A stretch of DNA of 64,000 bases from Epithemia pelagica (taxonomy: Eukaryota > Protista > Bacillariophyta), in contig OX337236.1 of the NCBI GenBank assembly GCA_946965045.2, positions 3,038,001 to 3,102,000 on the forward strand, read 5' to 3'. Below are positions 9,147-41,290 of this stretch, piece by piece. The notes under the pieces are model-generated. The model was not told where the DNA came from. It saw nothing but the letters and a program-made list of their open reading frames with translations, and searched no databases. Both the position numbers and the translations under genes were made by a program. Positions within the stretch are counted from its first letter, which is position 1. Every line of letters begins with the position of its first letter.

Positions 9147-9561
9147 ATGAGCTCAATGACTCAAGCTCCACAAGAACAAGAAACAACAAAGGAAGGAATC
9201 CTCATTGATTTGGAACAACAAGAACGCATGGAGGAGGACCAGCCGATCCACATGGTTCCTGCACAACTAGAACAACCAGAAGGGATCCTGATTGAGTTAC
9301 ACCAAGAAACCATTCTGGAGAAGGAGAGAAAGGAGATCCGCAATGACCCAAACGGGGACGGCGACCAGAAGAAGAAGAAACGCCATTGGAAGTTGAAAGA
9401 CCGATGCGAGTACGGTGAGCACCACCACGACCAGTCAAACCACGACTCGGTCTCCTCCTCCTGGAAGTAGTACTACTAGCATCATCAGTGCCTCCTCGCT
9501 GTCACACCACCATGCCGCAGCCGCAGTCGGCGACTACCATTGGTCCTCGGGAGGGATGTAG
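9147..9561 (+). pseudogene. Probable 5' fragment of a host gene cut by the recombinase element
   Basis: ATG-started E/Q-rich ORF followed by frameshifted low-complexity coding-like sequence. It ends at the GATGTAG repeat and continues in frame at 16991. Confidence 0.4.
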
Positions 9562-10371
9562 GATCCCTGCACGTGCCTATTTTCTATAGCCCATTTTGTA
9601 CTGTACTCGGTTTTTAATTTTAGTGTACGTATGTATTTTAGCGGTCGTGGGAAATTCCGAGCGTAAAACCAGGGTCACAAAATGGATCGAAACGCAACCG
9701 AAACAACGAGAGAAACCGTAGTGAAAGAACCAAGGAACAGAGGCAGCAAGAAACATGACAATCAAACAAGCGAGGCAATAAGCACAACAGCGAGGAAAAG
9801 CAAACATCAATCAACCAAAAAGGGCGGCCAAGGCAATAGAAGCAACAAACATCAAGAAGCAGCATGACAGAACAGCAGAGCAAAAAACAAAGGTAAAGCG
9901 ACAGCAGAAGCATCAAGAGAGACAAGCAAAGCATCAAACAAAGAATCCAAAAGCGATGCAACAATCAACCAAGACAAATAGCAAAGCAGCAATCAACCAA
10001 AGGCAAAAACCAGCGCAATAAGCCAAGAAAGGCAAGAACCAACAATAGAAACAGAGACGACGAAAATGAAACAAACAACAATCAACCAAATACAGAAACA
10101 CAGAAGCATAACCAACAACAAAACAGAATGAATCAAAGAGCAGACCGAGAGAAAAGAGAATCAAGACAAAGGTTAGAGATGCATTGGTAATGGGAATGGT
10201 TGCAACAATCAAAAAGAGCGAAGAAAACACTTACATATTGAAGCGATCTACACGAAGAGCTCAAGCAACAATCTGCAATGAAAAGGAAGTAGTGAGAACA
10301 AAGAAAAGACGAGACAACAATCAAACACAGAAAACTTACCTAGTTCAGTAGTATCGTCCACCATGGTGGTG

Positions 10372-14263
<3,892 letters not shown>

Positions 14264-14446
14264 GGTGGCAACTCAACAATCAAATGGATGAGGAAATGAC
14301 GACGACGACAACAACAACAACAACGCCTACAACGATGCCTCTCACATTTTCAAAGACAGCCCTATGTAGCACCTAAGTATTTCGTTTGCCCCTAAATAGT
14401 GAGACGCTATGTGATCTTCTGTTCCTAAATAGTGAGATCCTAAGTG

Positions 14447-14576
14447 TTGTAAGTAATTTCCCCCAATAAGTGACTACATAGACTAAGTAGAGCAACGACT
14501 TTGAAAAATCATTGTAAGTAATTTCCCCCAATAAGTGACTACATAGACTAAGTAGAGCAACGACCTTGAAAAATCA
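14447..14576. repeat. Two tandem 65-bp repeats upstream of the YR gene
   Basis: 14447-14511 and 14512-14576 differ at one base. A shorter related repeat, CCTAAATAGTGAGA, occurs near 14391 and 14424. Confidence 0.95.
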
Positions 14577-14766
14577 ACGGAGGAAAAGCCCAACAAATTT
14601 TAATTCTGTGTGACACATACATCCCCCCTCGGACGCAACGGAAGCGCACGACATCTGCTCCTTGTCGTGATTCTCGTCGGGGGCACTTCTCGGAGGCCTA
14701 ACTCCTCGGCGGGCAATAGGTCCTCGTCGTGTACTGCCCCAAATCCGCTTATAGCGGATTTGTTGG

Positions 14767-14979
14767 TGCGGTACCCGGACTCTGTCCCGCCACGACTCCA
14801 CGTAAACATGACTCGATAGGTCCCTAGTTGAATCTGTGACATCTTTGACACCGACGTTCTCAGAATTCAGTCCGTCCTTGTCCCGTGTGCAGATGGCTTC
14901 TCTGGCCATCGCTCACTTTCCTAGCCTAATTCCTAAAGATCATAATTTTTACGTCCTACCATTATGCATGGGTATGGCA
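14767..14979 (+). repeat. 5' LTR of the gypsy
   Basis: TGCGGTACC...GGTATGGCA, identical to 16682-16894. Confidence 0.96.
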
Positions 14980-14995
14980 CTCTGAGTTCCGCTCC

Positions 14996-16594
14996 ATGTT
15001 GCTTGGCTGTGCCGCCTTGCACATTCATACCGATCACAAAAATCTCACTTATTCCACTCTCAACTCCCAACGAGTCCTTCGTTGGCGTCTCTTTCTCGAA
15101 GAATACAATCCCATCTTTCATTATATTCCTGGCCAGGATAACGTCATCGCCGACGCGTTGTCGCGTCTCCCTCTTTCAGAAGAGGAGGAGAAGAGTGTCC
15201 CTTCCAAGGTCCCTTCCGACGGTCCCTCGTCTGGACCACGATCCCTTTTCGATCGTAGCGGCAAACACTCCGTGTTTCAGGTTCCTCGTGCGCCTAATGA
15301 TGACCCCCGCTTAGCGTCTCGTGACGCGGATTCTCATGAATCCCCTATTTTCATGGACGAAGAGTTGATCGATGTGTATCTTAATCATCCCGCCATTACG
15401 GCCAACCAACCCCTACCGGTTGACTATGCTACGATATCTCAGCATCAACAAAACGATGCCGCCTTAATGGCGTTGGTCCAATCCAAACCTGACTATTATC
15501 ATTTGCAACCCTTTCCTACGGAAAATCCACAATACAACCTTGTCTGTTATCGACAATCGGTTAATGCCCTCTGGCGCATTCGCATTCCTGACTCGCTTCT
15601 CGCACATACAGTCAACTGGTATCATCTCGTGCTTAACCACGCTGGTTCCACGCGACTCCGCGATACTATCGCCATGCACATGACGCATCCCCAATTGGGA
15701 CTCTACTGCGATCAAGCTGTTTCCAGCTGCCCGACCTGTCAACGGTCAAAGGTCGTTCATCGACATTACGGAGAATTGCCTCCTCGTGAGGTCCGTGGTA
15801 ATCCCTGGTCCGACATTGCCGTCGATCTTATCGGCCCCTGGACAGTCAAAGTCCATGGCATGGCCCTAACCTTTCAGGCTCTGACGGTCATTGACACTGT
15901 CACCAATTTTTGCGAGATTATCTGCATATACGACAAAACCGCTCGACATGTCGGTCTCCAACTCGAGAATTCATGGCTTTCACGATATCCTCGCCCTGTT
16001 CGTTGCCTTTTTGATCAAGGCGGCGAGTTTATCGGCCATGCGTTTACGCAAGTGCTTCGCAATCATGGTATCAAACCAGTGCCCCTAACGGTCAAAAATC
16101 CACAATCCAATGCCCTATGTGAACGTCTTCATCTGACAATCGGCAATTCATTACGCGCTATCGTTAACTACGAGCCGCCGCAAAACATTGAACAGGCCGC
16201 TCTTATGGTCGACACTGCTCTGCAAACCGCTGCATACTCTGCACGCACTGCCATCCACGGCAGCCTCAAACATTCTCCCGGCAGTCTTGCGTTCCACCGT
16301 GACATGCTGTTCGACATTCCCATCCTTGCGGACATGGAATTGATTCGTCAAAAACGCCAAATCATCGTTGACGAACGAGCTCGACTCGCAAATCGCTCTC
16401 GCGTCTTTCATGACTACAAAATTGGAGATCGCGTGCTCATCCGCGCTACCAATCCGGACAAATTGGCACTTCGTACCAGTCCCAATCCTTTCACTATCAC
16501 GCGTGTCCACTCCAATGGCACCGTGACCATTCAACGTGGTCCCCACGTTACCGAGCGCATCAATATCAGGCGTCTCATCCCTTACCGTGTGTGA
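14996..16594 (+). CDS. Gypsy RNase H C-terminal remnant plus complete integrase
   Basis: HTDHKNL...NVIADALSRL (end of RNase H); H-LVLNH...CPTC (HHCC zinc finger); VDLIGP, FDQGGEF and SNALCER (DDE core). Confidence 0.93.
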   Translation: MLLGCAALHIHTDHKNLTYSTLNSQRVLRWRLFLEEYNPIFHYIPGQDNVIADALSRLPLSEEEEKSVPSKVPSDGPSSGPRSLFDRSGKHSVFQVPRAPNDDPRLASRDADSHESPIFMDEELIDVYLNHPAITANQPLPVDYATISQHQQNDAALMALVQSKPDYYHLQPFPTENPQYNLVCYRQSVNALWRIRIPDSLLAHTVNWYHLVLNHAGSTRLRDTIAMHMTHPQLGLYCDQAVSSCPTCQRSKVVHRHYGELPPREVRGNPWSDIAVDLIGPWTVKVHGMALTFQALTVIDTVTNFCEIICIYDKTARHVGLQLENSWLSRYPRPVRCLFDQGGEFIGHAFTQVLRNHGIKPVPLTVKNPQSNALCERLHLTIGNSLRAIVNYEPPQNIEQAALMVDTALQTAAYSARTAIHGSLKHSPGSLAFHRDMLFDIPILADMELIRQKRQIIVDERARLANRSRVFHDYKIGDRVLIRATNPDKLALRTSPNPFTITRVHSNGTVTIQRGPHVTERINIRRLIPYRV

Positions 16595-16681
16595 CATGGG
16601 TTTTACTGCCGTTGGCCTCTGGCCATCAAGCTTTCCCATGGCCCGCTCGAACTTCCTAGGTCCGACCAGGGAGAGGTAGAG

Positions 16682-16894
16682 TGCGGTACCCGGACTCTGT
16701 CCCGCCACGACTCCACGTAAACATGACTCGATAGGTCCCTAGTTGAATCTGTGACATCTTTGACACCGACGTTCTCAGAATTCAGTCCGTCCTTGTCCCG
16801 TGTGCAGATGGCTTCTCTGGCCATCGCTCACTTTCCTAGCCTAATTCCTAAAGATCATAATTTTTACGTCCTACCATTATGCATGGGTATGGCA
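16682..16894 (+). repeat. 3' LTR of the gypsy
   Basis: Identical to 14767-14979. Confidence 0.96.
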
Positions 16895-16990
16895 GTTGGG
16901 CAGTACACTCCTCGGACCTATTGCCCTTCTCGGAGTTAGGCGCCCCTCGTCGTGCCCCACTCCTCGGATCACTCCGCGGAGCAGATGTAG

Positions 16991-18239
16991 AACTACGACA
17001 CGAGTACCATTGTCACCAGCACCCACCAGTCGACCGTGACCATTGCACTTTTGGAGGAGGAATCACAACAACAACAACAAGAAGATCCACAAGTCACTTC
17101 TTCTTCTTCTTCTTTGTTTTGGAATACTGGCGACGACACGGCTCCAGCAGGCTTGGATCACACGTACTACTACCAAAGATGAGGATTCCCTCATTTTGCG
17201 GCACATTCATTTGGACCATGTGGCCCTGCAATGGTTGCGGAATCAATACCAGGTCTGGTGTTTGGAACGACGACGCCAACCCTGCCTCCCTACGGCCAGC
17301 CCCACCAAACTACAACGTCTCGTATTGGATCAGTGTTCCTACAGTGGCGATTGTTCCACCCGACAGGCCTTGCTCCAGTTTTTGAATCATGTGGGACCAG
17401 AACTGGTCGAACTGGTCGTTCAGGAAACCACCATTCCTTCCCGGATTATGGGCCACCCGCAAGATGCAGAACCACAACCAAATGAGGAAGAAGACGAGGA
17501 CGAGGAGTTTCTGTCAGACGCCTCCTTGGCGGGTCCCATCTTGGCCGGCTTTCACACCATGGGTGCATCCTTGGAACGCTTGGTCTTGGATCATGCCGAT
17601 TTGCGTCGTCAGGGCTATGCCTTGAGGTGTTTTTTGGCCAAGGCTCGGAACTTGCATTCCTTGACCTTGTCGTCCTGTCACGTTTCGGACGACACCTGTC
17701 GAGCCTTGAATACGGCCCTTTGGTATCACAAGCAACTGGCCGTCCTCAACACCCGTGGCGGTACCCTGCAGCATGCCACGGATGAGTGGGTCTGCGAGTT
17801 GGCTTACACCATTCAACAAGCCTCGGCCGTATCGCCCCATTCGTGTCAATTGCAACTCTGGGACTTGTCGGATACCGTCTTGGGAGAACGGGCGGCCGAG
17901 GCCTTGCATGGATTGTGGAACAAGTGCATGGTGATTTGTTCCACGACGGACAATGACGACCACACGAAGGGCGACCACCACACGAATCCCCATGGGACTC
18001 ACCACAAACCGCGGTCGTCCGTTTTGGACCAATCGACGGTGGAAACCCAAGAAGAGTCGACTACAATGAACGACTCGCACCAGTATCCCATGCCCTTGTA
18101 TTACGACACGACAACTGCCATGGTGAACATGGACCACCACCACCACCAAGACTTGCAGCAAGACCAACCACCCTATTCTTGTCTGATGCAGATGGAAGAC
18201 ACGTGTATTTGGGCCTATTTGCTCTGTCATGCCGAGTGA
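16991..18239 (+). pseudogene. RNI-like leucine-rich-repeat protein, 3' part of an interrupted gene
   Basis: LxxLxL repeats (LERLVLDHADL, LHSLTLSSCHV, LQLWDLSDTVL). No ATG start, and a frame change near 17170-17190. Confidence 0.55.
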
Positions 18240-19233: not shown

Positions 19234-20004
19234 TTAGTAACTTTTCTTTTCCTTTTCCTCGCAGGTCACGACAAAGGATGCGTGAAAGCCCTTCTCGTTG
19301 CATCCATTGAGAATCTCCATACCATTGTAGACAAAACCAGGATGGGCCACGGCGGTAACAATGACGGCACTCGATGCGGTCTTGGTAAACAAAGTACATT
19401 CCCCGGAATCATGAGTGTCGTTGCAGTCACAGCAGATATCCGAAATGGTTGGCTTTTGCGTCGCGCAGGGACAACTCACTCCCAGTTCGGCTCCAGGAGG
19501 TCCCGGCTTGATTTCTGTCATGGCCTGGTTCACGGCAAAGGTTTCGGCCACAGCCCCATCCGGAGGACCCTCCGGCATCGTCAAGGCCGCCTTGGAAATG
19601 GTCACGGGTTGAGTGGATGCCAGTGCTACCTTGAGGACATCATGCTTGGTCACTCCATCTTTGCCGAGTAGTGTCTCGCCTTTGACAATGGCATCGCCAA
19701 AGCCAAAACAAGTCTTGTGGGAACAAGAGGCAATGTTCTTGGACTCCGAGACGGCAAAGGGAACGACGGTCCCATTGATAAATTCTGTCGTCAAGGATCG
19801 ACCCACCAAACCAGGTGGTGTCAAGGGCGAATTCGGATCAATCTCGAAGTTCACGAAATAGAAGCATGGACGATCGTCCTTGGGAGGAGGAGGAGGGGGA
19901 ACCTTGTCTTCGTAGTCGTCGTAGTGGTCCTTGGCAATGGTCAACGATGTCAAATAAAAGAGGGAGACAAGAACGGATGCAACGGATTTGGAGATCATGG
20001 TCAT
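19234..20004 (-). CDS. Secreted Cys-rich protein of unknown family, paralogue 1
   Basis: Signal-peptide-like MTMISKSVASVLVSLFYLTSLTIA. Shared motifs CSHKTCFGFGDA, CPCATQ and GCxxxGFHASFxVTC. Confidence 0.85.
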   Translation of the reverse strand: MTMISKSVASVLVSLFYLTSLTIAKDHYDDYEDKVPPPPPPKDDRPCFYFVNFEIDPNSPLTPPGLVGRSLTTEFINGTVVPFAVSESKNIASCSHKTCFGFGDAIVKGETLLGKDGVTKHDVLKVALASTQPVTISKAALTMPEGPPDGAVAETFAVNQAMTEIKPGPPGAELGVSCPCATQKPTISDICCDCNDTHDSGECTLFTKTASSAVIVTAVAHPGFVYNGMEILNGCNEKGFHASFVVTCEEKEKKSY

Positions 20005-20640
20005 GTAGAAAGGATCAATGAATGGTTGGCGTCTTGGTCTGTTGCTTTGTTTGGTATCTTTTCGCGGTGTGGAAATCTGCAAATTGTGAGACCACCGACA
20101 CGACGAGGGAGAGAGAACAACTCGTTTCCTTGTTCCTTGCTTCTTCGCTTCAACGAATCTGGCGAGCGCGTCTGCGTGGTCTATTATTTTTGGCCGAATC
20201 TGGCGAGCGCGTCTACATGATCTATTATTTCCGGGTCCCTAAGCTTGCATCATGGGAACATTTGGTCTTGATTGGTTGTGCATGCTCGGACACGTGTAGG
20301 TATTTCTGTGGCATGCGCACCGGGGGATGCGCCATGACAATTAAGCGAGTGCAACGCTCACTTTTTCACAAAATCCAGAAACAAACTAGCGACGATTCTT
20401 GTTATCCTCCGTTTTCTCTAGAGTCGGCAAAACCAAGTCGCTCTCGAAAGCGCCCGTCTCCCTAAAAAGGAGAGTCGCCAGAATGGATGAATAAGATATC
20501 TTTATAGTTTATTACTACTGTTCACTTCTGGGTCCTGAATGATTATGGTTGTGACTGACTGTCTGCCTGTCTGTCTGTAGCCAGTCTTGTCCAAACACTG
20601 ACTGAAGCAGTGTCGTCTTTCGTTGCTAGATTCTTCCTAA

Positions 20641-21381
20641 TTAATAATGCGTCTTCTTCGTCTTTTCTGAGCATGTGACTCTAAAGTGTCCATGGAAACC
20701 TTGTTCATCGCAACCATCGGTAATTGAAGTCTGCTCCGTAAGTATTGTTGTTTTGGCAACGGGCGTCGCAATTACGGCACTGCCGGCCCGGTTAAAGAGG
20801 AATTGGCACACTCCATGATTATTATTGCATTGGCAATCCACATGATCCACGGTAGGAACTTGGGTGGCACAAGGACAGATGATTCCAATCTCGGCTCCAG
20901 GAGGAGTGGGCTTGGGAATGTCGTCAGCAGTTTGGCTAAGTTCATCGGCGGTTGTAAAGCCTTGGAGGCCCGACTCGTCAATGAGGACGGGTTGATAAGA
21001 AGCCACCTCAACCTTGAGAACATCGTGCTTGGATCCATCTTTGGGACTGGTAACCGTCTCGCCCTTGACAATGGCATCTCCAAATCCATAGCAAGTCTTG
21101 TGAGAACAGGACGCAATGAGTTTGGAATCGCCAGCGGCGAAGGGAACGACTTGTCCTCCTCCAAACTCGGCCGTAATCTCTCGTGCAACTTGGCCTTCAG
21201 GAGTAAAGGGAAGTCGAGGATCAATCAAAAAGTTGATGTAGTAAAAGCGAGGATGTTCAGGGGCGGGGGTGGGAGCTGCCGTCGGAGCGTACTTGTAGTC
21301 ATCCTTGTAGTCGTCTTTGGCAAGGACCACGGCTCCGAGAGAAGCAAACAGAGCGGCTTGGAGAATGTGTTGTTTGACCAT
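20641..21381 (-). CDS. Secreted Cys-rich protein of unknown family, paralogue 2
   Basis: Starts MVKQHILQAALFASLGAVVLA-KDDYKDDYKY; same Cys motifs as paralogue 1. Confidence 0.87.
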   Translation of the reverse strand: MVKQHILQAALFASLGAVVLAKDDYKDDYKYAPTAAPTPAPEHPRFYYINFLIDPRLPFTPEGQVAREITAEFGGGQVVPFAAGDSKLIASCSHKTCYGFGDAIVKGETVTSPKDGSKHDVLKVEVASYQPVLIDESGLQGFTTADELSQTADDIPKPTPPGAEIGIICPCATQVPTVDHVDCQCNNNHGVCQFLFNRAGSAVIATPVAKTTILTEQTSITDGCDEQGFHGHFRVTCSEKTKKTHY

Positions 21382-21977
21382 TGTTGACAAGAAAAGGTAT
21401 GGAAATCGTTCGTGTGATCAGCCTTGACTGGGTTTTTGAAATTATGAGACGGAGGAGAAGCAACATGGACGTTCTCTTCAGCGATAGTTGCAAATTGAGC
21501 GACGAGCTGTGTTCTTCTTTGAGTTCTTCTTTTAGCGATAGGAGAGTGAGTAATGCAAACAATCAATGATTGATGATTGATTGAATGATTGATTGCGTCT
21601 TCTCTGGTCTCTGAGCGCTGACGCATGTCTATGATGGATGCAAGCGGAGCAAAACCCTGCTGACGCACGTCAAGGATCCTTTTTGAGATTCAAACTTCAA
21701 TGCGCGATGCCTCTACCCATGCACGCGCGAAATCCATTCATGCATGTACTTTTTAAATCACGAATTCCATCGGTATGATGAATCAAAGATGTCAGGGATA
21801 GAGGGACAGAGGGACTGAATCGTACTCGTGAGGTTTCTAATTGTATGGTTGCTGGTGCGACATACATACAAGATGAAATGAGATTTGTTTTGGATTTACC
21901 TCAATTTTCGACTATTAAACATCTATTTACTTAAAATATCCTGTCAGTTCTCCATTTTTACTTGGGTCGTTCGGTTT

Positions 21978-22895
21978 TTAGTAGTCCTTCTTCATCTTGT
22001 CCACGCAAGTGACTTTGAGTGAGGCATGGAAACCTCCGTTATCACAACCAGTTCTGACAGTCAAATCCTGTTCTGCTCCAATTGGTATCGTATATCCAGT
22101 GCCAACAGCGGCACCAAAAACAGTGGATCCAAGCACTTTAGTGATAATTTTGCATTCTCCGTGATTGGAGGAACAAGCGCAGTGCACGTCATGCTCTTCA
22201 ACCATAGCCTTTTGGGTGGCGCAAGGACAGGTGATTTGAAATTCAGCTCCGGGGAAGATAGCGTGCGTGGGGGCAGCGGGCATATCTGCGGCCATTGGGT
22301 CCGTGTCAGTCGTTGGCGGTCCAAAGGCCGTCGTGTCCATAAGCTCTTGTTCGAGAATCGTGACCTCTTGGAACGAGGCAAGATTGACGTGGAGGACATC
22401 GCATGGTTGTCCATACTTGGTAACGTTGCTTGTACCAGACACCAAGGCGTCTCCAAATCCAAAGCAGGACTTGTAAGAGCAAGGTGCTGGGCACTTGGAC
22501 ATGCCGTTGGCAAAGGGGCACACTTCTCCCTTGGGGAAATCGGCTTGCAAAATACGGGACACCAACGGGGGAGCTTGGTTTTCCATGGCCGAATCACCAC
22601 CCGAACCATCCATTACAGGAGATTGACCACTACCCGGTCCATTCATTACAGGAGATTGAGTTGGAGTAATTTCGCCATCAGGGTCCATGACCATCATTAC
22701 AGGCTTGGGGGCCTCGAGGTTCTTGTAAAAAAACTTGGGATCCTTAGGCTCGGGTGTTGGAGCCGCCGTTGGGCCGCTGTATTTGTAGTCGTCGTACTTG
22801 TCACTCGACTTGCTGTTGAGTTGACGAAGGTTGCTGGTTTCTTCGGCAAAAGAACCAGTCAAGAGAAGAGCGAGGACAGAGGCTTGAACGAACAT
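21978..22895 (-). CDS. Secreted Cys-rich protein of unknown family, paralogue 3
   Basis: Starts MFVQASVLALLLTGSFA, carries the diatom-style LRQL processing-like motif and the same Cys motifs, and has a PVM-rich insert. Confidence 0.87.
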   Translation of the reverse strand: MFVQASVLALLLTGSFAEETSNLRQLNSKSSDKYDDYKYSGPTAAPTPEPKDPKFFYKNLEAPKPVMMVMDPDGEITPTQSPVMNGPGSGQSPVMDGSGGDSAMENQAPPLVSRILQADFPKGEVCPFANGMSKCPAPCSYKSCFGFGDALVSGTSNVTKYGQPCDVLHVNLASFQEVTILEQELMDTTAFGPPTTDTDPMAADMPAAPTHAIFPGAEFQITCPCATQKAMVEEHDVHCACSSNHGECKIITKVLGSTVFGAAVGTGYTIPIGAEQDLTVRTGCDNGGFHASLKVTCVDKMKKDY

Positions 22896-23718: not shown

Positions 23719-26700
23719 CTACAGTCTTTGACCTCGGACCGAGTGTCGTTTACCAAACGAGGTAGACGTCGACCCGCCAGATCCTTTGCTACTACTTGCA
23801 GACTTTTTCATACGACCAAACACTCCTTTTTTCTTTTGTTGAAGATGTTCATCTTCGACAAAGTCGTCATCGTCGTCGAGACTATTGGATGAAAATGATT
23901 TGCGGTGATGAGGGGGTTGCTGGTGCAAGGACCGAGACGACGAAGTCGCAGCTTCCGTGCCACCAAGCCCTGCCCCTTGTAACTGTCGTTCCATGGCTTG
24001 AGCAACTTCGGGGTTCGATTTGTCCAACCCCAGTTCTTTGAATGTACTATAGGCAGTAGTCCAACTCGATTTTGCTGCAGACTCATTGCCTTGTAGCTTG
24101 TGAATGTTTCCCATAGTGAACAAGGCATTGACATAGTCACCATCTGGTTCTGTTTCGTTCGCCTCTCTGATACTCATGAACTCACTCAATAGCTTCAAGG
24201 CACGATCCATCCGCTTTGCCTTGAACTCGACAGTTCCCATGAATTGCAACACTGAGGCAACCGATTCATCGCTACCCCCATGCAAACGAGACCGAACGGC
24301 CAAGGCCTGTTGATAGGACTCCATGGCCTTTGGAAGCTTGTCGCGATCACTGTATACGTGACCTATCGCAAGATAAACATCTCCTACGCCGTCATCATCT
24401 AGACCGCCACCCAGTGCTTGTTTCCGTATCTTCAAACATTCTTCGTATCGGTCCTTGGCCTTGTCGTAATCCTGTTTCTCGCGATAGAGATTGCCCATGT
24501 TCTCGAGAGTCGCAGATATCTTTCTCTTGTCGCCATGAAGCTTACGAATGCGAAGAGCTTCTGTGAGAATTTGCAGTGCACTGTCCGTTTCTTGTCGCTT
24601 GATTTGAATCGAGCCCATTGCGTTCAAGCAATCCCCACATTCCGCGGCATCTTCTCCTAGTTTAAACTTTCGAATGCTGTAGGATTCATCCAAGCATTCT
24701 AGCGCCTTGTCCAGAGCGCCTTGATGCACAAGTGTGAATCCCATGCTGAAAAACGTCTCGGCAACGGCAACATCTTCTGCACCGAGCTTGTCGTGTCGAA
24801 TCTTGAGTGCTTCCCGATAATACTTGGAGGCTTCCTCGTAATCACCCAATCCATCAAACATGTTTCCTAATTCTTGCATCACTTTAGCCACAGCCACATG
24901 ATTCGGTCCGTGGATGTCTTTCCGAATGCGCAAGGCTTCCATCAACGCCATTTCTGCCTTTTTGGCCTTACCAATGTCGCGCGCCACACAACCAATCTTT
25001 TCGTGTGTTGCGGCGACGGGTACACTTTCTGGTAGTCGAAGTTGTCGGATCTTGAGGGACTCTTCAAGACATTTAAGTGCCTTATCAAGTCGTTTCCTTG
25101 ACTGGTGGAGTGCAGCAGTGTCAAACAGAGTCGTGGCTACATCTAAATGAACGTATCCGAATACTTTGCGACGAGCATGCAAGCTCTCCTCCAGTAATTT
25201 GATAGCCTTTTTGGCTTCTCCCTTTTCCAGATAGACAAGGGCGATTGAATGGAGCAATGACGCCACCTTTTCCTTGCGATGTGGTACTTTGGTGACAAGT
25301 ATAGACAATGCCTTTTCATAGCATTCAATAGCCTGTTGATGGTGATCTTTGTCCTCATCATCCCGCCCTTTCTCCTTGCTCTTCTTTTTATCTTTCTTCT
25401 TTTGTGGTTGGTGTGGGTTTTGTCGAGCATCCAGACTGTGTAGAATTCCTTTTGTTGTCCACACATCCGCATCTTTTTCATGCCCGCCATGAGGATCCAG
25501 CTCACGTAGTCGGATTGATTCCTTGTATTGGACAATCGCGTTTTCCACAGTTCTGCTGTCATCGGCCAAGCAATGGCCAATTCGTTCATAGATGGTGGCA
25601 AGCTCCGCACTATCTTTTCCTAAATCGGCCATCTTCGACCGCAGTGCACCTTCAAAGCTCGTCAACGCTTTGTCCTCAAGTTCTCCTTTACAATAGTGAA
25701 TCCGTCCCATGTTTTCGAGAACATCACCGATATCAATGCGATGGTGACTTGGCTCAACGTGCATGACATCCAGAGCCCAATTATAACTTTCCATTGCCTC
25801 CCCATAGTCGCTCATTGCCCAAAATATGTCACCGATTTTCTGAATTGTTTGTGCGTAGAGAATGTGCTCTTCTCCATGAATGGCACCACGGATACGCAAA
25901 CATTGCTTCAATGCGGTGAGAGCCTGTTCAAACCCATCCACTCGTTGGGAGTACACAACGCCAACATTGAATAGCACACCAGCTACAACTTCCACCATTC
26001 CCAAAGACGAAACGAACAATTCTTGACTGCGTTCCCAGTGCTGAATGGCGGCCTCCCAGCACCGCTTCTGTGCCAATGAAAATCCAATCTCAAACTCGCA
26101 TCGAGCTACTTCCACTGCCTCAGGCGATCCTTCTTCCTTGATGTACTCTTCTTCGTCCATGGCCAAGTGGTCACCTAGTACCCGGAAAGCTTGTTTCAAG
26201 ACACTTCGTGGCTCGTGCTGTTTTTTCTTACCACTACCACTCGTCAGATGCTTCTGTTTTTGTAAGGCATCATAGAGAATTTCACAGTCATGAATGTGTC
26301 GCCGAGCACCGTTTTCTCGTCCCAGAGCAAACAATCGTCCACGGACAAATTTTTCGTTCGACAGCAGCTTAACGGCGTCAGAATACATACCACCGCGAAT
26401 CATATGCGCTGGCATCATTTCCAATGCGTAATCCAAGCCTGCATCGGGCGCTTCAGTGTCCCAGGCAATTTTTCTGACCAAGAACGTATCACAGTATGTG
26501 CGATTCCAACGTCGTTCGGCTCGCACCGTGAAGTCTTTAAGGGAAATATCCTCTTCCAGCAAGTATTCGGCATATTCTTGTTGAACCACGTGTGTTACTT
26601 GTAGATACTTCTCCGTAACTGCCTCTCCTTCTTCACCATCTTCGTCGATTCCTGGTTGGGAAACCGTCTCAATTTGCATTAGAACACCCAAAGAAGTCAA

Positions 26701-29700
26701 AGCTTCAGGAATCAAGGCTGCAGCCTCTTTTTTGTCATCATGAAGCAGGCTTCCTTCTTCGCGAAGGCTCCGTTCTTCCAGACGGAGCAGCCCTTCGAAG
26801 AGAGTTTCAGCTGTCATCAACGGGACAATTGGGCTAGCGTCGGCAAGAGCAAAGTCAGATATGAACTCCCTGTCGCAGAAGACTCGGACAAAGGCAGCAA
26901 AACAGAACTTGATAATTGTCGTTGGTTCTCCATTGATGGCCGGTGAAAGACTCATATTCAGAATCTCGTACATCATATCATCGCCTTCGTCACTAAGAGT
27001 AGATGTTCCGCTGCGCAATATCTTTTCCATGGAGGTAAGCACGTCATCTTCGGGATTGGCATCTTCGTCCTCGGATTCTCCGTTGTTTCCCGCAGCGGTG
27101 GCATGCTTTAGGTTCAGCCATCGTCCTACACTCTTAACAGCAAGGGGGTGATTCGCACATTCCCGGACGACCGCCTGGGTCTTGGAGGGTGATTCCGTCA
27201 GAATCCCACACAAATTTTCTCCAGATTCTTGAATAAGCAATTGAACCGCTTCTTGCTCTTCCAAGACCTCAACCTCGACAGTGTCATTGGAAGGAAGCAA
27301 ATCTCGACGACGTGTGGTCAAGAGAACAAAGCAACCACCCTCTAGAGGTCCACCATTGTCATCTTCAGCTGGGCCACCAAAATCGAACCAATCCAAATCG
27401 GCATCCAACCAGACATCATCTAGAACCAACAAGACATTGAATTCTTGCAAGAAATCAGCCATACTCTCTCTGACAAACATCATGAATCCTTCTTCTCTTC
27501 GACGACTTCGTGACCCGGGTTCACCGGGCGTCGGTAACATTTCTGGGAAGAGGGGTTCATTGTCAATATCGGGTAAATCCAACTGTGCAAGAACGTCCTT
27601 GAGGATCTGAACGTATCGAGTATAGTTCAGTTCTCGATTTCCGATATAGATCCAGGCAATGCCATCGGAAAACTGTCTTCGGACATCCGGATGAGTCGCC
27701 ACCATGGCTGCCAAGGTAGATTTACCCACACCGGCAACACCGAGATTGGCTTCCCCATCGGGTTCTTGTTTTTCAGAGCTTCGTTCGGGAATGGATGAAA
27801 TTGCAATCATGTTCGATGCCACTACCACTGGTTTCTTGTTGTTTTTGAGACTATCTCGACTGAGGGTCGGATCCGTAATTTTGTCCCCCGGCAAGAGACG
27901 TCTCAGGATACAAGACAATGTGTGTCGTCGCGGAATCGGCGGTCCTCCGTGAATCTTTTCCAGTACCTGTTGGGCTCCTTCGGGTGCGGCGGCCAGTCCT
28001 TCTTGATTTTGCGCTGCAGCGACAAAGGCTGCAGCTGCTGCCGCATCGGCCCGCGGGCGGAAATGACCCTCGGCCAACATGGATTCATCAATGCTACAAA
28101 TATCCATGAGTGTTTCCACGTTGGTGCACCACTGATCACAACTCAAAATGACTTGATAGGCAATTTGTCGAAAGACGGTGAGATCTTGTGTCTGTTTGGA
28201 CAAACTCTTGTACTCTTTCAAATGCCCCGTGGCAGTCCAGGCTTCGTGCAAAAGATTGGATAATTTGTATTTGGGAGTATCAACGTCGTTGAAGATAGAG
28301 GTGACTTCCACAGTGTCACGTGCAAGCAACTCCAACAAGGTCGTCCAAGAGGTACAGGCGCGGGGTGTCCATTCTTGTCGCTCTCCCACTCGTTGACCGA
28401 TTTCCGACAAGAGTTCCAACATGAGAGTCATACCATAGAACAAATCACCCATTTCTTCATCCACCGTGTTGGAGGCGGAAGTGAGGTAGTGTTTCAGAAC
28501 GGGCTCGAGTTGGACAAAGGTTTGATCGATTATGGGTGCAAAGTCCAAGAGGGAATTGAGGGCGGCACTAGCAGCCTTGTCCTTGGCGTTGGCAAACGTG
28601 GACACTAATTCCACTTCATCGGATAGTTGCAACAAAATTCCAATAAAGGTCTCAAATCCATTCATGAGGTTTTGACAATCGTCCTCTTGTTCTTCTTCAC
28701 TGTTGTTCTTTTTGCTCTTTTTCTTTTTCTTTTTGGTCTGCGCCGCATCCTCAATTTCCTGCAAAGTATCATTGACATGGGCCACCAGACCCAGTAAGGC
28801 TTCGCTCTTGACCACTTGATGTCGTCGACTCTTTTTCTTTTTGCCAGCCGCCTTCTTTTTGGAACTGTTCTTGTTGTTTCCCTCGTCACCCAGCGGCTCT
28901 CCTTCTTCGTCTTCGACCAAGGGTGGATCGTCGGCCATGGACGACGAAGCACTCGAGTGAACAGAAGACGACTTTTTCTTGCGCCCCGCACTATTTGTAT
29001 TGATAGTCCCCGAGCTACTCTTGCGGTCTCTTCGTTTCGTCGTCGCTCCTGACTTTTTGCCCTTGCTTCGTTTGGTTTTGGATCCTTCCACGGCAGCGTC
29101 ATCCACAGGTTGCTGGTCCTCCATATCCTCCTCTCCTCCCTCCGTCACTAGCTGTGAATCACTCATGACTTGATTGGCATCGTCCAGATCCATGGCATTC
29201 TCCGTGTCCTCTCCATGAGAAGAAGAAGAAGTCGATGACTTTTTCTTTTTGTGCGTCGTCTTGGCATGATTGCTGGTGTCCTCTTCCACGTCCATCATTC
29301 CATCCTTATCTTTGCTCTTGCTGCGTTTGGAGGCACTCTTGGCCAATTTTCGAATTTGATCACGAGGGCTGCCATGTCCTCCGGACCGTTTTGATTTGGG
29401 ACTCCGGGGATTGTGATGATGGTGATGGTGGTGCTTTTTGGGACTCTGAGGCGCCTCCTCGCCTCTATCCTCATGTTTCTTGCTGGTCGCTCGTTGATGA
29501 TTGCTATCTTGATGGTTGGCTGTTGCCGCTGCGGCAGCCGCAAATCCCTTGCCCTTATTGTGATGATGCTTCTTGTTGTGTTTCTTCTTCTTCGTCTTGG
29601 CAGTGTCATTGTTATTGGTATCTTCAGCCTCCTCCAAGGCATCTTCCATTGGATGATCGTCGTCGCCATCAACGTCCTCCTTCTCTGCCATTTCTTCCTC

Positions 29701-31236
29701 GTCGGCGAATGCTACAGGTTGCTCATCTTCTCCGTGATTTTCCTCATGCTCGTTTTCATCATGGATCAAATGCTCGTCCTCCGAATCCTGTTTCTTGGAT
29801 TTGCGGTGATGATGTTTGTGGTGATGATGATGCTTGTGATGATGATGTTTGTGATGATGCTTGCTGTTGCTATGATCCTCATTGTCTAGTGGAGTCGGTT
29901 CTTCGGGGTCCTGCACTACCAGGTCGTCGTCGTCGTCGTCATGCGCCGAAAAGCTATCCATTTTGGATTTCTGGGGGGCATCCATCATGGTAGTGCCATC
30001 CGTGGTGGCCGGAGTATTGTTTCGACTGGTATTGGTAGTAGTTTGGTGATCATGATCGTCGTCCGATAAGGAATCCAACTCATCCTCTCCTTCCGTGTGT
30101 TGTTGGGGGTCCTGCGCATCTTGTTCGTCTTGGTGGTCTAAAAACAAGTCTCCATCATTGACACTACTCCCATCAATGGTGGAATCTTCTTCCATGGGTA
30201 TCATTTTGTCCGGATCATCATCATAATCCTCTTCGTCATCGTCGTCAATCATGACATTGTCGGGAGACGACGACCCAACACCAAAGGGTGATGAGGAGGA
30301 CACGGCATCCACTGTTTCGGAGACCAGCATGACGGGCTCTTCTTCGTCGTCGTCATTATCGTCATCGTCATCCAAATTAAAGGTATAGGGTTGTTCTTCT
30401 TCTTCTTTTTCTTCTTCTTCTTCTTCTTGTGATTGCACAGCCTTTGGAGGCCTCTTTTTATGGGTCTTTTTCGGGGAACAGGATGCGGCCGCAAACAAGT
30501 CTTCGTGACTCGACACCTCCATGAGGGAATCCTCTCCTCCTTCTCCTTGAGAATGGTGGTCGTCGTCATTAAAGGAATGGTGGTTGTTGGTGGTTCCAAA
30601 CAAGGTTTCAGCTTCGTCATTGTCTGTTTCATGAATCGTAGTGGCATCAAACCCCCCAAAGTCATTGGAATGGGGTGGTTCGTGGTGCGTGGATGTACTA
30701 AACCCAATCGTTTCATCCGCATCGTCATCGTCATCGTCCTCCACAGTGGCTGCCGCCGACGGAAACAAGGGGGATTCCGTGTGGTGGTTAGTGTTGTGGT
30801 TGGGAAGGGGATGATTGCTTTCCTTCCAGACTTCGTTATGACCCGAGGTATCCCAAGCCATCAGGTTGTTGTGGTTGTGGTGGTTGGAATTTTGGTCACT
30901 GTCGTCGGCTTCGGCAAAGGCCGGTACTTGGGACGATGATGATGGAGCCGCTGGAATATTCGCAGTATCGTCGTCCGTGACAAAAAAGGATTCGGCATCG
31001 TCCGTGGCCATGGAACGAGGAGATTCTTCTTGTGTTGGAGGTGCTGCCGCCGCCGTAGTACGGCGTTGGGAGGATTCCACGGATGAATCATCATCACTGC
31101 TACTACTGTCATGGACTACCACGGCTGGTTTAGCGACAGGAGGAGCCTTCCAAAAGTTGTCATCTTGATCTCCCATGGACGAATCCGCATCACTGCTATC
31201 ATCATCATCTTCTTCACTACTGGAATACCGACCCAT
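23719..31236 (-). CDS. STAND NTPase of NB-ARC type with C-terminal TPR array (NLR-like), 2505 aa, apparently intronless
   Basis: GVAGVGKST (Walker A), LLVLDDVW (Walker B), VLLTTRR (sensor 1) and CANHPLAV (GxP), followed by many TPR units (e.g. ALKCLEESLKIRQLRL). About 830 aa of acidic/His/Lys low-complexity sequence at the N-terminus. Confidence 0.9.
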   Translation of the reverse strand: MGRYSSSEEDDDDSSDADSSMGDQDDNFWKAPPVAKPAVVVHDSSSSDDDSSVESSQRRTTAAAAPPTQEESPRSMATDDAESFFVTDDDTANIPAAPSSSSQVPAFAEADDSDQNSNHHNHNNLMAWDTSGHNEVWKESNHPLPNHNTNHHTESPLFPSAAATVEDDDDDDADETIGFSTSTHHEPPHSNDFGGFDATTIHETDNDEAETLFGTTNNHHSFNDDDHHSQGEGGEDSLMEVSSHEDLFAAASCSPKKTHKKRPPKAVQSQEEEEEEKEEEEQPYTFNLDDDDDNDDDEEEPVMLVSETVDAVSSSSPFGVGSSSPDNVMIDDDDEEDYDDDPDKMIPMEEDSTIDGSSVNDGDLFLDHQDEQDAQDPQQHTEGEDELDSLSDDDHDHQTTTNTSRNNTPATTDGTTMMDAPQKSKMDSFSAHDDDDDDLVVQDPEEPTPLDNEDHSNSKHHHKHHHHKHHHHHKHHHRKSKKQDSEDEHLIHDENEHEENHGEDEQPVAFADEEEMAEKEDVDGDDDHPMEDALEEAEDTNNNDTAKTKKKKHNKKHHHNKGKGFAAAAAATANHQDSNHQRATSKKHEDRGEEAPQSPKKHHHHHHHNPRSPKSKRSGGHGSPRDQIRKLAKSASKRSKSKDKDGMMDVEEDTSNHAKTTHKKKKSSTSSSSHGEDTENAMDLDDANQVMSDSQLVTEGGEEDMEDQQPVDDAAVEGSKTKRSKGKKSGATTKRRDRKSSSGTINTNSAGRKKKSSSVHSSASSSMADDPPLVEDEEGEPLGDEGNNKNSSKKKAAGKKKKSRRHQVVKSEALLGLVAHVNDTLQEIEDAAQTKKKKKKSKKNNSEEEQEDDCQNLMNGFETFIGILLQLSDEVELVSTFANAKDKAASAALNSLLDFAPIIDQTFVQLEPVLKHYLTSASNTVDEEMGDLFYGMTLMLELLSEIGQRVGERQEWTPRACTSWTTLLELLARDTVEVTSIFNDVDTPKYKLSNLLHEAWTATGHLKEYKSLSKQTQDLTVFRQIAYQVILSCDQWCTNVETLMDICSIDESMLAEGHFRPRADAAAAAAFVAAAQNQEGLAAAPEGAQQVLEKIHGGPPIPRRHTLSCILRRLLPGDKITDPTLSRDSLKNNKKPVVVASNMIAISSIPERSSEKQEPDGEANLGVAGVGKSTLAAMVATHPDVRRQFSDGIAWIYIGNRELNYTRYVQILKDVLAQLDLPDIDNEPLFPEMLPTPGEPGSRSRRREEGFMMFVRESMADFLQEFNVLLVLDDVWLDADLDWFDFGGPAEDDNGGPLEGGCFVLLTTRRRDLLPSNDTVEVEVLEEQEAVQLLIQESGENLCGILTESPSKTQAVVRECANHPLAVKSVGRWLNLKHATAAGNNGESEDEDANPEDDVLTSMEKILRSGTSTLSDEGDDMMYEILNMSLSPAINGEPTTIIKFCFAAFVRVFCDREFISDFALADASPIVPLMTAETLFEGLLRLEERSLREEGSLLHDDKKEAAALIPEALTSLGVLMQIETVSQPGIDEDGEEGEAVTEKYLQVTHVVQQEYAEYLLEEDISLKDFTVRAERRWNRTYCDTFLVRKIAWDTEAPDAGLDYALEMMPAHMIRGGMYSDAVKLLSNEKFVRGRLFALGRENGARRHIHDCEILYDALQKQKHLTSGSGKKKQHEPRSVLKQAFRVLGDHLAMDEEEYIKEEGSPEAVEVARCEFEIGFSLAQKRCWEAAIQHWERSQELFVSSLGMVEVVAGVLFNVGVVYSQRVDGFEQALTALKQCLRIRGAIHGEEHILYAQTIQKIGDIFWAMSDYGEAMESYNWALDVMHVEPSHHRIDIGDVLENMGRIHYCKGELEDKALTSFEGALRSKMADLGKDSAELATIYERIGHCLADDSRTVENAIVQYKESIRLRELDPHGGHEKDADVWTTKGILHSLDARQNPHQPQKKKDKKKSKEKGRDDEDKDHHQQAIECYEKALSILVTKVPHRKEKVASLLHSIALVYLEKGEAKKAIKLLEESLHARRKVFGYVHLDVATTLFDTAALHQSRKRLDKALKCLEESLKIRQLRLPESVPVAATHEKIGCVARDIGKAKKAEMALMEALRIRKDIHGPNHVAVAKVMQELGNMFDGLGDYEEASKYYREALKIRHDKLGAEDVAVAETFFSMGFTLVHQGALDKALECLDESYSIRKFKLGEDAAECGDCLNAMGSIQIKRQETDSALQILTEALRIRKLHGDKRKISATLENMGNLYREKQDYDKAKDRYEECLKIRKQALGGGLDDDGVGDVYLAIGHVYSDRDKLPKAMESYQQALAVRSRLHGGSDESVASVLQFMGTVEFKAKRMDRALKLLSEFMSIREANETEPDGDYVNALFTMGNIHKLQGNESAAKSSWTTAYSTFKELGLDKSNPEVAQAMERQLQGAGLGGTEAATSSSRSLHQQPPHHRKSFSSNSLDDDDDFVEDEHLQQKKKGVFGRMKKSASSSKGSGGSTSTSFGKRHSVRGQRL

Positions 31237-32458
31237 GATAATTATGATGCAACGTGTGGTTGCTGTTGTGGTGGTGGTGGTGGATTGAGGATGCTATTTA
31301 CACAGCGTCTAGAGGGGTTCTTTCAGATGTGTGGAATACTAGAGAGTTCGAGTCTTTTTCGAATGATTGTTGTGGTTGGTTTTTGGTGGTGGAAGGAATG
31401 TCAACAATAACCGGTACAATGGAGTGACTCTCTTTTCACAAATCCACAAACACTGACGGCACAGGAGCAATAATGAATTGGGAGAGTGAATGCCAGGAGA
31501 GAGAGAGAGACTACGAGACACGAGACAACGTGGATTGGTGTTGTTGGTTGTCTTGCTTTTGTTTCTCCCTTTTCTTGGTTGGTTGGTTGTTTGTTTCAAC
31601 ACAAAAAAAGGGGAAGTCTTTGAACTCTACAGTGTACAGTCGGTTCTTTTTGGCGTGTGGAGTGTGGCTTCCAAGTTCCAAGGGAAACTGAAATTTTGAG
31701 TGGATTTTTTCTTTTTTCTTTGGTGGGGTTGCGGGGATGAACCGCGTTGTGGTTATATTTTGTTCATTTCTGGTGTGGCAATTTCCGATTCGATCGGTCA
31801 TTTTCAGACCAAAGCATTGGGCCTGTGTGACGCGTGACTCTCTCCTTTTGTCTTTTGGACTTATGCAGATGCGAAAGTTTTACTTAGACCCAACCAGCCA
31901 CGAAACCTACCCAACACATTTCTACTACAGCGGTGGAATGTTTGGAACTTCTTGGGAAGTCTGCGCCGGAGGAAAAGGCTATCCCTTCTACACAATAACA
32001 GAGAAGCGACGATACAACGAGGCCTCTCTATTTCTAGGACTATACCTTTACTAGAGATTGTGCTCTTCTCGAGGGAAAATGATTCGATCAATCCACAAAG
32101 TCTCTACTAGAGCTAGTAGATAGTTAAGAGGAGAACACAACAAGAATCCACAGAGTTCGTCCATATGTGATGATTCTAATAGACCTCGGTATGTGCTTGT
32201 CTTTGGATTCGATCGCCTCTCTTTGACTATACCAAAGGAAAGGAGTCCTCAATGGCTTACTTTTCAGTCTCCCTCTCTCTCTATTGATACCAAGCCTTGT
32301 TGTCAGGGGTGAACGAGACCAAGAAAAGGGTCCGATCTAAAGAGAACACAGCAACAGACAAAAACAACAACCAACGACAGTCCAAGGACCCGTGTTTTCG
32401 AATTCGTTTCTCATGGATGGTGGTGGTGATGGAAATTGTGAGATGATCTCGAGGCTGT

Positions 32459-33171
32459 CTAAAATTCCGGTTCTTCGTCTCCTGCTCCTTCCTCCCCCAT
32501 GACAGTCGTTGTTGTGGTTGTCTCCATACCAAGAGAGGCTTCTTCTTCAATCGTGGTTTCCGACAGGGCACCTTTTGTCAGGACGGCTGCACTGGCCAAC
32601 AACAGTCGCAACTGCTCTTCACTCGATTCATGAGCCAGTGTATAGCAGTAGGTCCAAATCAACAGGCAGAGTGCCATGGCATGGACCAAGCCGGCAAAAA
32701 TCACTTGTTGGGCAAACACGTCCGTGGGGACAAAGAGATAAAATTTGCAATACATGGTCGGAACAAAGGTAATCACATTCAAGGCTTGCAGCAAATAGGG
32801 CGCCGAACGAATCAAATTGCTGCCGACATAGGTACCATAGGCCACGGCCAAGCAAAAGCGAAACCAAATCTACACAATTCAATGGGAATCGTACAATGAC
32901 ATAACAACAACAACAACAATGAGACAGTCCAGCATGCAACAGCAATACAAAACCAAAACAATGGTCAGTTTTTCAACACAACAATACCGCACCACACAGT
33001 CCTTGTGGGGAGAGCAACGACGCACATGACAGGGCCATTCTTGGTACCGGCAAAACTACAACGTACCAAAACAGTGGGCAGTTCGGGGAAGGATTCTTCC
33101 GTGGGTTTCAAATTGTAAGTGGTAGCCTTTTGGAGAATGGCACGAATGCGAGGCCACGAAAGCGAAATCAT
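32459..33171 (-). CDS. Rab5ip/EMC6-family (RAB5IF-like) small membrane protein, two exons
   Basis: Exons 33171-33067 and 32869-32459, separated by a GTACGT...TGTAG phase-0 intron. The segments IWFRFCLAVAYG and GLVHAMALCLLIWTYCYTLAH resemble the family pattern. Assignment is by recall only. Confidence 0.65.
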
Positions 33172-33980
33172 GGTATTGTAGGTCTGTGGTTATTGTTGTC
33201 GTTTGTGGTGTGGTGTGGGAGGCAATGCAATTCTTGTTCCCAAGCCTATCTATGGTTCGAGATACCACGCACCAAACAGGAGAAGGAGGAGGAGGTGGGA
33301 CTGCCAACTGCAACAACAAACGTACACAACAACGAGAAACACACAAGAAGAGATGCCGGTGTCCATGGAATGGTCCTTGTCGTCTCGTCTCTTTGGCATT
33401 ACATCCACATATCCCACCTTCCACCAGCGCACACGTCAAAAATCTTTCTCCGAACGAATCTCAAGCGTTTGTAAAGTTTATAACAAGACAGAAATCAGTA
33501 GCTTTTGGAATCGGAGCGCGGGGCAGTATGGTGCGCACATACTACTTGCCTCTAGCGCTATCTATCTAGGTAGGTAGGTACTCCTATGTCGACTTACATG
33601 CTTCTCTATGACCCCCCCAGCATGGTATATGGTCACCATGCCTTCTCCACGAGACCGAAACAACCTCCGAATACACAACACACCCTTTCCATCGTTTGGA
33701 CATGGTTGGAACTACAATAGCTAGGAACAGCACTATCTACAAGACACTACCAAAATATCGAATGCCTCTCCACACACACCTTTAGAAACGGTCTCTCTCA
33801 CAGACGCCAGCAGTTTCCGGTCCCGACCGCCTTGATACGACGTAACAGTTTTTGGTGGGTCGTTCTACAAGGGGGAGGATCCATCCTGTATGGATGGATG
33901 GATGGGTGTGTCCATATCCAGAGGACAGCCCCTGCCATCATCCACAATGGCACCACGAATCAATGAATGTCTTTTTCTTG

Positions 33981-35468
<1,488 letters not shown>

Positions 35469-35533
35469 TTAGCTCAAAAGTTGTCCTCGCCTGCTCTCCG
35501 TGCTCCCATTGTCACAAAAACGCCGCACGCACC

Positions 35534-40952: not shown

Positions 40953-41290
40953 GGTCCAGAATACACACAGTGTTCAGTTCAGAGTGTGATGACGGATGGA
41001 GAGGACGTTTTCTGTGGTCTGTGGTGCGACGACAGAGCGTGGTGAATAAAGTGCGACCTGATCAGTCGCATTAGCAAGTCGCGCATATAGTTCGTGCCCC
41101 CTGTGCCGAAATTGAGGAACGTATCTTTTGTTGCAGAGATTGCGCATACATCGTTTGTGGTCTCTCCTCGAGTAGCGAAATATAGGAGAGGGATACACAG
41201 CGAGCCTGGAATACACTCTCCCAATCCTCAAAATCACAAGCTGCTAGCTACGGTGAAAGACGAGTGGCGTATCAACTAGTCGTCTGTCTC

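Follow-up and report, generated by a model that had tools for sequence, protein, structure and literature searches.

A conserved rod-like hairpin at one end of a Crypton in Epithemia pelagica and its possible role in a folded attachment site

What does a 205-nt hairpin with five regularly recurring internal loops do at the end of a mobile element whose class is known for having almost no structure of its own? The question is raised by an element at positions 9534-16996 of a 64,000-nt stretch of Epithemia pelagica DNA (assembly GCA_946965045.2, contig OX337236.1, 3,038,001-3,102,000; this whole stretch is called the window, and positions refer to it). By the tests run, the element is a Crypton, with a tyrosine recombinase only, no reverse transcriptase, no terminal inverted repeats and short direct repeats. 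Published accounts credit Cryptons with short direct repeats and with no inverted repeats or any further hallmark (PMC3212892); CryptonS, the stramenopile group, is bounded by repeats of 5-6 bp that mostly read TATGG (Kojima and Jurka 2011, PMC3212892). They have been contrasted with the hairpin-bearing IS200/IS605 elements (PMC3627910), and a 2025 survey found them hard to classify for want of structural features (PMC12130899). Full-text literature searches returned nothing relevant on a hairpin or palindrome in Cryptons, in agreement with the initial annotation of the window, which knew of no such structure. The terminal rod palindrome, seen in one genome and one related assembly, is a new feature on a Crypton. 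We propose, with a probability of roughly 55%, that the hairpin is the main part of the Crypton attachment-site architecture, acting in cis and in folded form.

The hairpin and its loop pattern

At the window locus the hairpin is interrupted by a retroelement with long terminal repeats (LTRs):

14651-14766, plus strand: left arm and apex of the 205-nt hairpin
14767-16894, plus strand: internally deleted Ty3/gypsy-type LTR element splitting the hairpin, with the target-site duplication GTTGG at 14762-14766 and 16895-16899
16900-16988, plus strand: right arm of the 205-nt hairpin

The two LTRs (14767-14979 and 16682-16894) have TG...CA ends and show no difference from each other across 213-214 nt. 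The single open reading frame (ORF) between them encodes an RNaseH remnant, then an integrase zinc finger, then an rve core, an order that identifies the Ty3/gypsy type. When the LTR element and one GTTGG were removed in silico, 14651-14766 and 16900-16988 joined into a single 205-nt rod. The two halves are contiguous at ten other loci of the same genome with 90-99% identity (C9:3011404-3011620, C9:2969267-2969483, C17:1092261-1092477, C8:2160571-2160786 and six more). Because these uninterrupted copies carry exactly the reconstructed join, the hairpin that had been predicted behind the retroelement is real. Two of them, C9:2969267 and C9:3011404, lie on the same contig and share the flanks of the window copy but have no retroelement; the LTR insertion is therefore younger than the duplication. 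The three copies with identical flanks (the third being window 14651, or C9:3052651) are about 42 kb apart, and their arrangement points to a tandem segmental triplication of a ~42-kb unit.

Alignment of one arm against the other shows a motif of two mismatches, one pair and two mismatches that recurs strictly five times. The five loops read on the plus strand as TTGTC/TCCGC, TCGTC/TCCTC, TTCTC/TCGTC, TCGGC/TTCTC and TCGTC/TCCTC were given correctly in the initial annotation, including their centres, which are G-C in four loops and C-G in one. The claimed 5x5 symmetry applies to the pattern of all five, with the reservation that the second loop carries an additional bulged base. Nineteen of the 22 mismatches are T.C, C.T or T.T on the plus strand, and the other three are G.T wobbles. 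The same bias is present in ten representative hairpins, in which 221 of 263 mismatches (84%) are pyrimidine-pyrimidine on the plus strand, while random decay of a palindrome is expected to give at most one third. On the recombinase-sense strand these mismatches become G.A and A.G, as had been noted, and are arranged as 5'-GA-3' over 3'-AG-5'. This orientation is known to form stacked sheared pairs, and tandem G.A is a classic RNA motif.

To compare the fold with chance, the intact copy was folded as DNA and as RNA, on both strands, against 200 dinucleotide shuffles. The DNA folds reached -70.0 kcal/mol (z -12.8) on the minus strand and -66.9 kcal/mol (z -12.3) on the plus strand; the RNA folds reached -144.1 kcal/mol (z -17.6, with the minimum-energy fold making up 19% of the ensemble) and -133.2 kcal/mol (z -15.5), respectively. 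None of the 200 shuffles reached the fold energy of the intact copy. The hairpin is thus beyond chance in each form, at z -12 to -18.

Selection on the pairing was examined in an alignment of 21 copies from four subfamilies with 52 pairs. In this alignment 98.2% of the cells were paired, and 15 of the 52 pairs had changed on both sides with pairing kept, compared with 0-3 when the partners were slid by 1-3 columns. The covariation score was matched by none of 500 shuffles. A single central loop pair switches between C-G (11 sequences) and G-C (10 sequences). Stem lengths range from 7 to 15 bp and vary between families, and because both arms alter their length jointly, the loops always stay opposite each other. 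The loop motif is TCNTC, with a longer form TYCTCGKS, on both plus-strand arms and GANGA on the recombinase-sense strand, and its register is kept. The hairpin of the most divergent family is built of 8-bp stems in alternation with 8x8 loops of the purine-mismatch type, and a standard energy model gives it a z of only -2.75, which suggests that purine pairs, or a protein, are needed to hold this rod together. Taken together, the compensatory changes, the motif found across at least eight subfamilies in two assemblies and the retention of the hairpin in non-autonomous derivatives argue that the structure is selected, as the initial annotation had held.

A few hairpins have been rearranged:

C16:1054818-1055022 (L011): one arm rewritten as the exact complement of the other, loops gone
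C13:2979800-2980180 (L070): arm rewritten in the same way, yielding a perfect palindrome
L116:3442-3651 and L075: further rearranged hairpins

One hairpin of the second assembly is a flip isomer in which the inner ~100 nt are inverted relative to the outer part. The rewritten-arm copies and the flip isomer show that the arms physically interact. The rewritten copies stay singletons, which fits selection for the mismatches.

The recombinase element and its ends

The element carries one gene, read towards the interior from the hairpin side, and the following parts of the element matter for its link to the hairpin:

9534-9537, plus strand: left terminal CTAC, whose TAC (9535-9537) is the direct repeat and putative crossover trinucleotide; homology with a copy on C8 begins here
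10372-13544, minus strand: tyrosine-recombinase gene, split into ORF 12276-13544, the catalytic ORF 11584-12345 and the Asn/Pro-rich tail ORF 10372-11484
16989-16996, plus strand: AGAAC spacer and right terminal TAC (16994-16996), where homology among independent copies ends; GAC at 16997-16999 is flank

The assignment of the protein as a probable tyrosine recombinase rests on conserved catalytic positions, language-model neighbours and predicted-structure matches. Among 32 relatives R122, R182, R185, R207-H208 and Y217 are near-invariant, and the usual His of the HxxR box is apparently Arg. The protein language-model neighbours are labelled Tyr recombinase/DUF3504. The AlphaFold model has a mean confidence (pLDDT) of 77, and its Foldseek matches are weak (E 0.05-4, TM about 0.4); the first 32 are all Tn1549 Int, Cre, Flp, Xer (XerH), IntI or SSV integrase, save for one QRICH1 (DUF3504-type) chain. 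Pfam gave no family in any ORF of the element proper, and for the recombinase ORFs none even at E 10. By Pfam the element ORFs also contain no Rep or HUH nuclease domain and no reverse transcriptase or other transposase, the sole rve/RNaseH ORF being the inserted LTR fragment. The tail ORF (10372-11484, minus strand), downstream of the catalytic exon, has a run of ~84 Asn followed by RPPYE-type repeats and poly-Pro.

A word-indexed protein search found four close relatives; the catalytic ORF has 38 matches in the genome, and an exhaustive search reached a second assembly (ENA ERZ21939226), whose host DNA is 84% identical to this genome. Hairpins were located with a covariance model, R1. As 150 of 13,065 candidates were scored, the copy counts are lower bounds: R1 found at least ~94 distinct hairpin loci in the genome. 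For 17 of 17 recombinase genes, of 44-100% identity, an R1 match lies ~2.3-2.5 kb upstream of the catalytic exon, and the pyrimidine-loop strand is antisense to the gene in all 17. The model discriminates orientation well, with 239 against 123 bits, and 136 against 72 bits in a family outside model building. In the second assembly, recombinases of 61%, 44% and 40% identity have a hairpin in the same place and orientation. A copy of 48% identity has one at the same distance; it is the flip isomer and scores alike in both orientations. In comparison with the second-assembly elements, the hairpin is also the best-conserved DNA (74% along 214 nt; the coding region reaches 69% along 190 nt). Linked to all 17 genes and to four lineages of the second assembly, the hairpin belongs to the tyrosine-recombinase element, as first annotated, and its purine-loop strand is the recombinase-sense strand wherever the orientation can be called, the flip isomer excepted.

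Three further recombinase copies (C8:413076, C8:436095 and C8:479921), with 62-64% identity and internal stops, form a decayed cluster within 70 kb, and no hairpin was among the R1 matches listed near them. We also observed that one contig set, X3, had a summed depth of 27,000-44,000 over the catalytic exon (window ~11570-11950) against ~1,000 elsewhere, while sets X1 and X2 were flat. X3 consists of 1.6 million short contigs; it may be a different library type, or its depth may add up many recombinase paralogues.

The majority of hairpin loci lack a recombinase gene in their vicinity. The genome has at least six hairpin subfamilies (A-F), and the related assembly has more; the inner half of the hairpin is nearly identical across all of them. 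Family C is a gene-less element of 379-385 bp, of which at least 16 different insertions were sampled (93-99% identity) and ~28 hairpins were found by R1. It retains ~70 nt of the left end, a short middle, a conserved box that precedes the hairpin, the hairpin itself, which makes up half its length, and the right tip. Families D (~450-960 bp) and E (~510-780 bp) also comprise gene-less derivatives with the same ends, and each gene-less family has an outer stem and tip in common with a gene-bearing family. Judged from their sequences, the gene-less copies are internally deleted derivatives of the recombinase element and not a separate miniature inverted-repeat transposable element (MITE). The hairpin therefore does occur at many loci apart from the recombinase gene, but there it lies between the same two termini as in the gene-bearing elements.

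In independent copies, all families begin flank|CTAC, and their right side ends just past ...GTAG-AAC-TAC; the direct repeats are CTAC...CTAC in family A and (C)TAC...TAC in the others. An element of the second assembly is absent from the orthologous site here (C17, about 116000). The empty site reads GTACTA-TAC-AACAC, with TAC once, and the filled site has TAC on both sides, its left junction being GTACTA-TAC-TACCGTTGG and its right junction ...TAGTAT-TAC-AACAC. These junctions indicate that TAC is the repeated crossover core and that the variable NAC past the right end is flank. The TAC repeat is constant in every copy, as a crossover core predicts; a TAC-specific 3-bp target duplication may instead have produced it. 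The base of the hairpin is 5 nt from the right TAC. The initial annotation had let hairpin and element end within a terminal GATGTAG repeat; the element ends at CTAC (16993-16996), and GATGTAG lies subterminally, at 9555-9561 and 16984-16990. Left flanks frequently have the form GT(C/A)-N5-CTAC and resemble the element's own right tip, GTAG-N3-5-TAC. This likeness would be expected if a site-specific recombinase recognised similar cores in the two partner sites.

Several other features accompany the ends. About 35 nt inside the left end (9571-9580) is a perfect 10-bp palindrome, GGCACGTGCC, with a G-box/E-box core CACGTG, conserved between family A and a second-assembly family (L115 near 7785). 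Tandem repeats of 33 nt x2 (14382-14446) and of 65 nt x2 at 98% identity (14447-14576) lie between the recombinase gene and the hairpin and may belong to a promoter or act as additional binding repeats; in the C8 copy, where the two alignment pieces overlap, apparently a single 65-nt unit is present. Elsewhere in the window, 19243-22523 holds three diverged tandem paralogues at ~1.4 kb spacing, probably a small tandem gene family, and 23719-31236 (minus strand) is one stop-free ORF of 2505 aa.

A proposed folded attachment site and its alternatives

The 205-nt hairpin folds as a rod and is the inner part of a longer palindrome that the left end of the element completes. The parts concerned are:

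9538-9562, plus strand: left-end arm, complementary to 14616-14640 at the joined ends, with one TCCTCG motif and GATGTAG at 9555-9561
14616-14640, plus strand: pre-hairpin box, outer left arm of the extended palindrome, conserved and adjoining the hairpin in all families
14640-14650, plus strand: GGAAGC-containing bubble strand facing the crossover site in the joined, folded form

When the right and left ends were joined in silico and their pairing was compared, by a crude score, with 2000 shuffles, 14616-14640 and 9538-9562 of family A paired at 24 of 26 positions with one tandem TC/TC mismatch, and 23 of the 2000 shuffles were as good. In a second-assembly family 42 nt pair across the joint, and no shuffle was as good. 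The right flank of the integrated element did not pair (score 14.5, the shuffle mean). The joined palindrome is ~270-290 nt long. Between the 205-nt hairpin and the outer stem it has predicted bubble strands GGAAGCGCACG and AGAACTAC, with the TAC inside, and GGAAGC or a near variant stands at the bubble position in families A-G. As the palindrome occupies one end of the element and the other end has a short stretch complementary to it, the two are not a classical pair of terminal inverted repeats.

Based on these results, we propose that the element is excised when the recombinase crosses its two TAC repeats with each other. Once the ends are joined, the outermost 25-45 nt of the left end would pair with the pre-hairpin box and complete the ~270-290-nt rod, with the TAC in an 8-11-nt unpaired bubble opposite the conserved GGAAGC. 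The rod may form on the circle, as a cruciform, or on single-stranded DNA, as a hairpin. One of its strands would offer tandem G.A pairs in a stack and the other strand open pyrimidine bubbles, and this purine/pyrimidine asymmetry would mark strand and orientation and give the recombinase, or a partner, a series of sites to bind. The rod would then serve as the attachment site, and the complex would recombine with GT-N-(C)TAC-like targets, which resemble the right tip of the element. As the palindrome is incomplete in the integrated element, it would also tell integrated from excised DNA. The data show the structure, its selection, its linkage to the recombinase, the termini and the retention in derivatives; excision, folding in vivo, strand choice and binding of the rod by the recombinase are inferred from them.

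Several observations weigh against it. Wobbles in the ten representative hairpins number 8 G.T against 18 A.C and favour neither strand. Since arm-to-arm conversion occurs, part of the covariation could be mechanical. The shorter stems and TC-type loops that families C, D and E form across the joint are not significant by the crude score, and the stems on either side of the bubble do not clearly repeat each other in inverted form. No head-to-tail joint pattern was found in the assembly, and the genomic contig sets, together with a marginal biofilm metagenome, gave copy variants and the right boundary but no circle joint, transcript or single-stranded form. Finally, known tyrosine recombinases cleave duplex DNA, yet the TAC is unpaired in the folded form.

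Part of this evidence would also suit an array of binding sites read in plain duplex DNA, iterons or arm-type sites with the sequence TYCTCGKS, for the recombinase or a host protein, with the palindromy left over and kept by conversion. The 6-8-nt motif is conserved and repeated in one direction 10-12 times in the hairpin, with one more motif before it and one at the left end, and conversion events between the arms exist. However, stems of only 7-14 bp between heterologous loops are poor conversion tracts, 15 pairs are compensatory, and compensated length changes hold the loops in exact opposition. Pairing of the left end with the pre-hairpin box arises only at the joint, and converted copies, being perfect palindromes, are rare singletons. 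We regard a duplex array as unlikely.

Also unlikely is an element acting as RNA on the recombinase-sense strand, either as a structured leader or as a long hairpin RNA processed into small RNAs with a regulatory effect on the element. Gene sense coincides with the purine-loop strand, which has the best RNA fold, and tandem G.A pairs are at home in RNA. But the hairpin begins 5 nt from the element end, so that it would need a promoter in host DNA or on the far side of a circle joint; the gene-less derivatives keep the hairpin; and Rfam 15 gave no match at E up to 1 over an intact 5.9-kb copy. The 5' RNA leader suggested in the initial annotation is itself unlikely, because a hairpin of about -140 kcal/mol would block scanning ribosomes and starts so close to the end.

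We consider it quite improbable that the hairpin is a replication origin or priming hairpin of the excised circle or of a single-stranded copy, a role that would explain the gain of copies. Some replicative step is needed to reach ~90 copies, flip isomers and arm-recopied variants resemble products of hairpin transfer, and many viral origins are palindromic; yet the element encodes no Rep, primase or polymerase, the hairpin is at one end only, and nothing links replication to a structure exactly at the crossover site.

That a separate foldback MITE landed in a Crypton, or that the palindrome is neutral and functionless, is very improbable: most hairpin loci are indeed without a nearby recombinase gene, but the hairpin always sits 5 nt from the right TAC without its own target duplication, lies inside the right end of an element with asymmetric ends, has both Crypton termini around it in the gene-less copies, is the best-conserved DNA of the element and is present in recombinase lineages diverged to 40-44% identity in two assemblies.

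Two other candidates were rejected. A guide RNA of the Fanzor/TnpB omega-RNA kind does not fit, as a gene of that kind is missing and the loops stay constant instead of matching targets; nor does a protelomerase-like hairpin telomere, as the junctions fall outside the palindrome. In metagenomes, a 24-mer of the conserved inner stem had no match, and 39 contigs found with a looser 19-mer were taken as chance matches, since none fits R1.

Relation to known recombination systems

Extended beyond this locus, the folded attachment site would mean that eukaryotic Cryptons use a structured, not a plain duplex, attachment site, in which the G.A modules of the joined ~290-nt rod instruct strand and orientation, as a counterpart of the attC and CTX-phage sites. 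We put this forward only tentatively, as a generalisation that may well fail. To our knowledge, the movement of a Crypton has never been shown experimentally, and structure-specific tyrosine recombination is known so far only from some filamentous phages and from integrons; use of the fold in vivo would extend it from bacteria to eukaryotes. The lack of hallmarks makes the non-autonomous relatives of Cryptons nearly impossible to annotate, and a search model of the hairpin found ~90 copies in one genome. The rod palindrome is a concrete, mutable cis-element 5 nt from the crossover site, and it is kept in recently spread 385-bp derivatives, which are natural mini-transposons for assays.

Like other Cryptons, the element encodes a tyrosine recombinase only, in a gene with introns. 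It shares with them the absence of a reverse transcriptase and of terminal inverted repeats, as well as short direct repeats at the ends, which are regarded as the substrate of recombination. It differs from them in its (C)TAC repeat, in the conserved 205-nt rod palindrome at one end that continues into the other end, and in non-autonomous families that can be recognised by the palindrome.

Long terminal palindromes in which conserved purine mismatches create asymmetry, together with flip-type isomers, are also found in parvoviruses and are like the rod described here. Parvoviruses, however, are linear single-stranded viruses with Rep and have hairpins at both ends.

The Starships and their Captain recombinases likewise have a eukaryotic recombinase gene at one end reading inwards, clean excision in their case, and a TTAC-type sequence of 4 bp as direct repeat and target, with further target positions conserved (10.1101/2022.08.04.502770). 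Unlike the present element, Starships are giant fungal cargo carriers with DUF3435 recombinases, sometimes with short terminal inverted repeats, and no long mismatch-bearing palindrome has been reported for them (10.1101/2022.08.04.502770); the protein here is without a Pfam match. IS200/IS605 elements, Helitron2 and Replitrons share an imperfect subterminal palindrome with compensatory mutation, which in those systems is needed in cis, but they use HUH nucleases and hairpins of 20-40 nt, and no HUH gene is present here.

A further likeness in architecture is to the integron attC and CTX-phage attP(+) sites, which are imperfect palindromes at the crossover with compensatory change, unequal strands and an unpaired centre (PMC5027507, PMC4792948). 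Those sites are bacterial, 60-150 nt long and marked by extrahelical bases, and their single-strand recombination has been demonstrated (PMC5027507, PMC4792948). The Crypton structure is a predicted 205-290-nt rod with symmetric loops of conserved sequence in a eukaryotic host.

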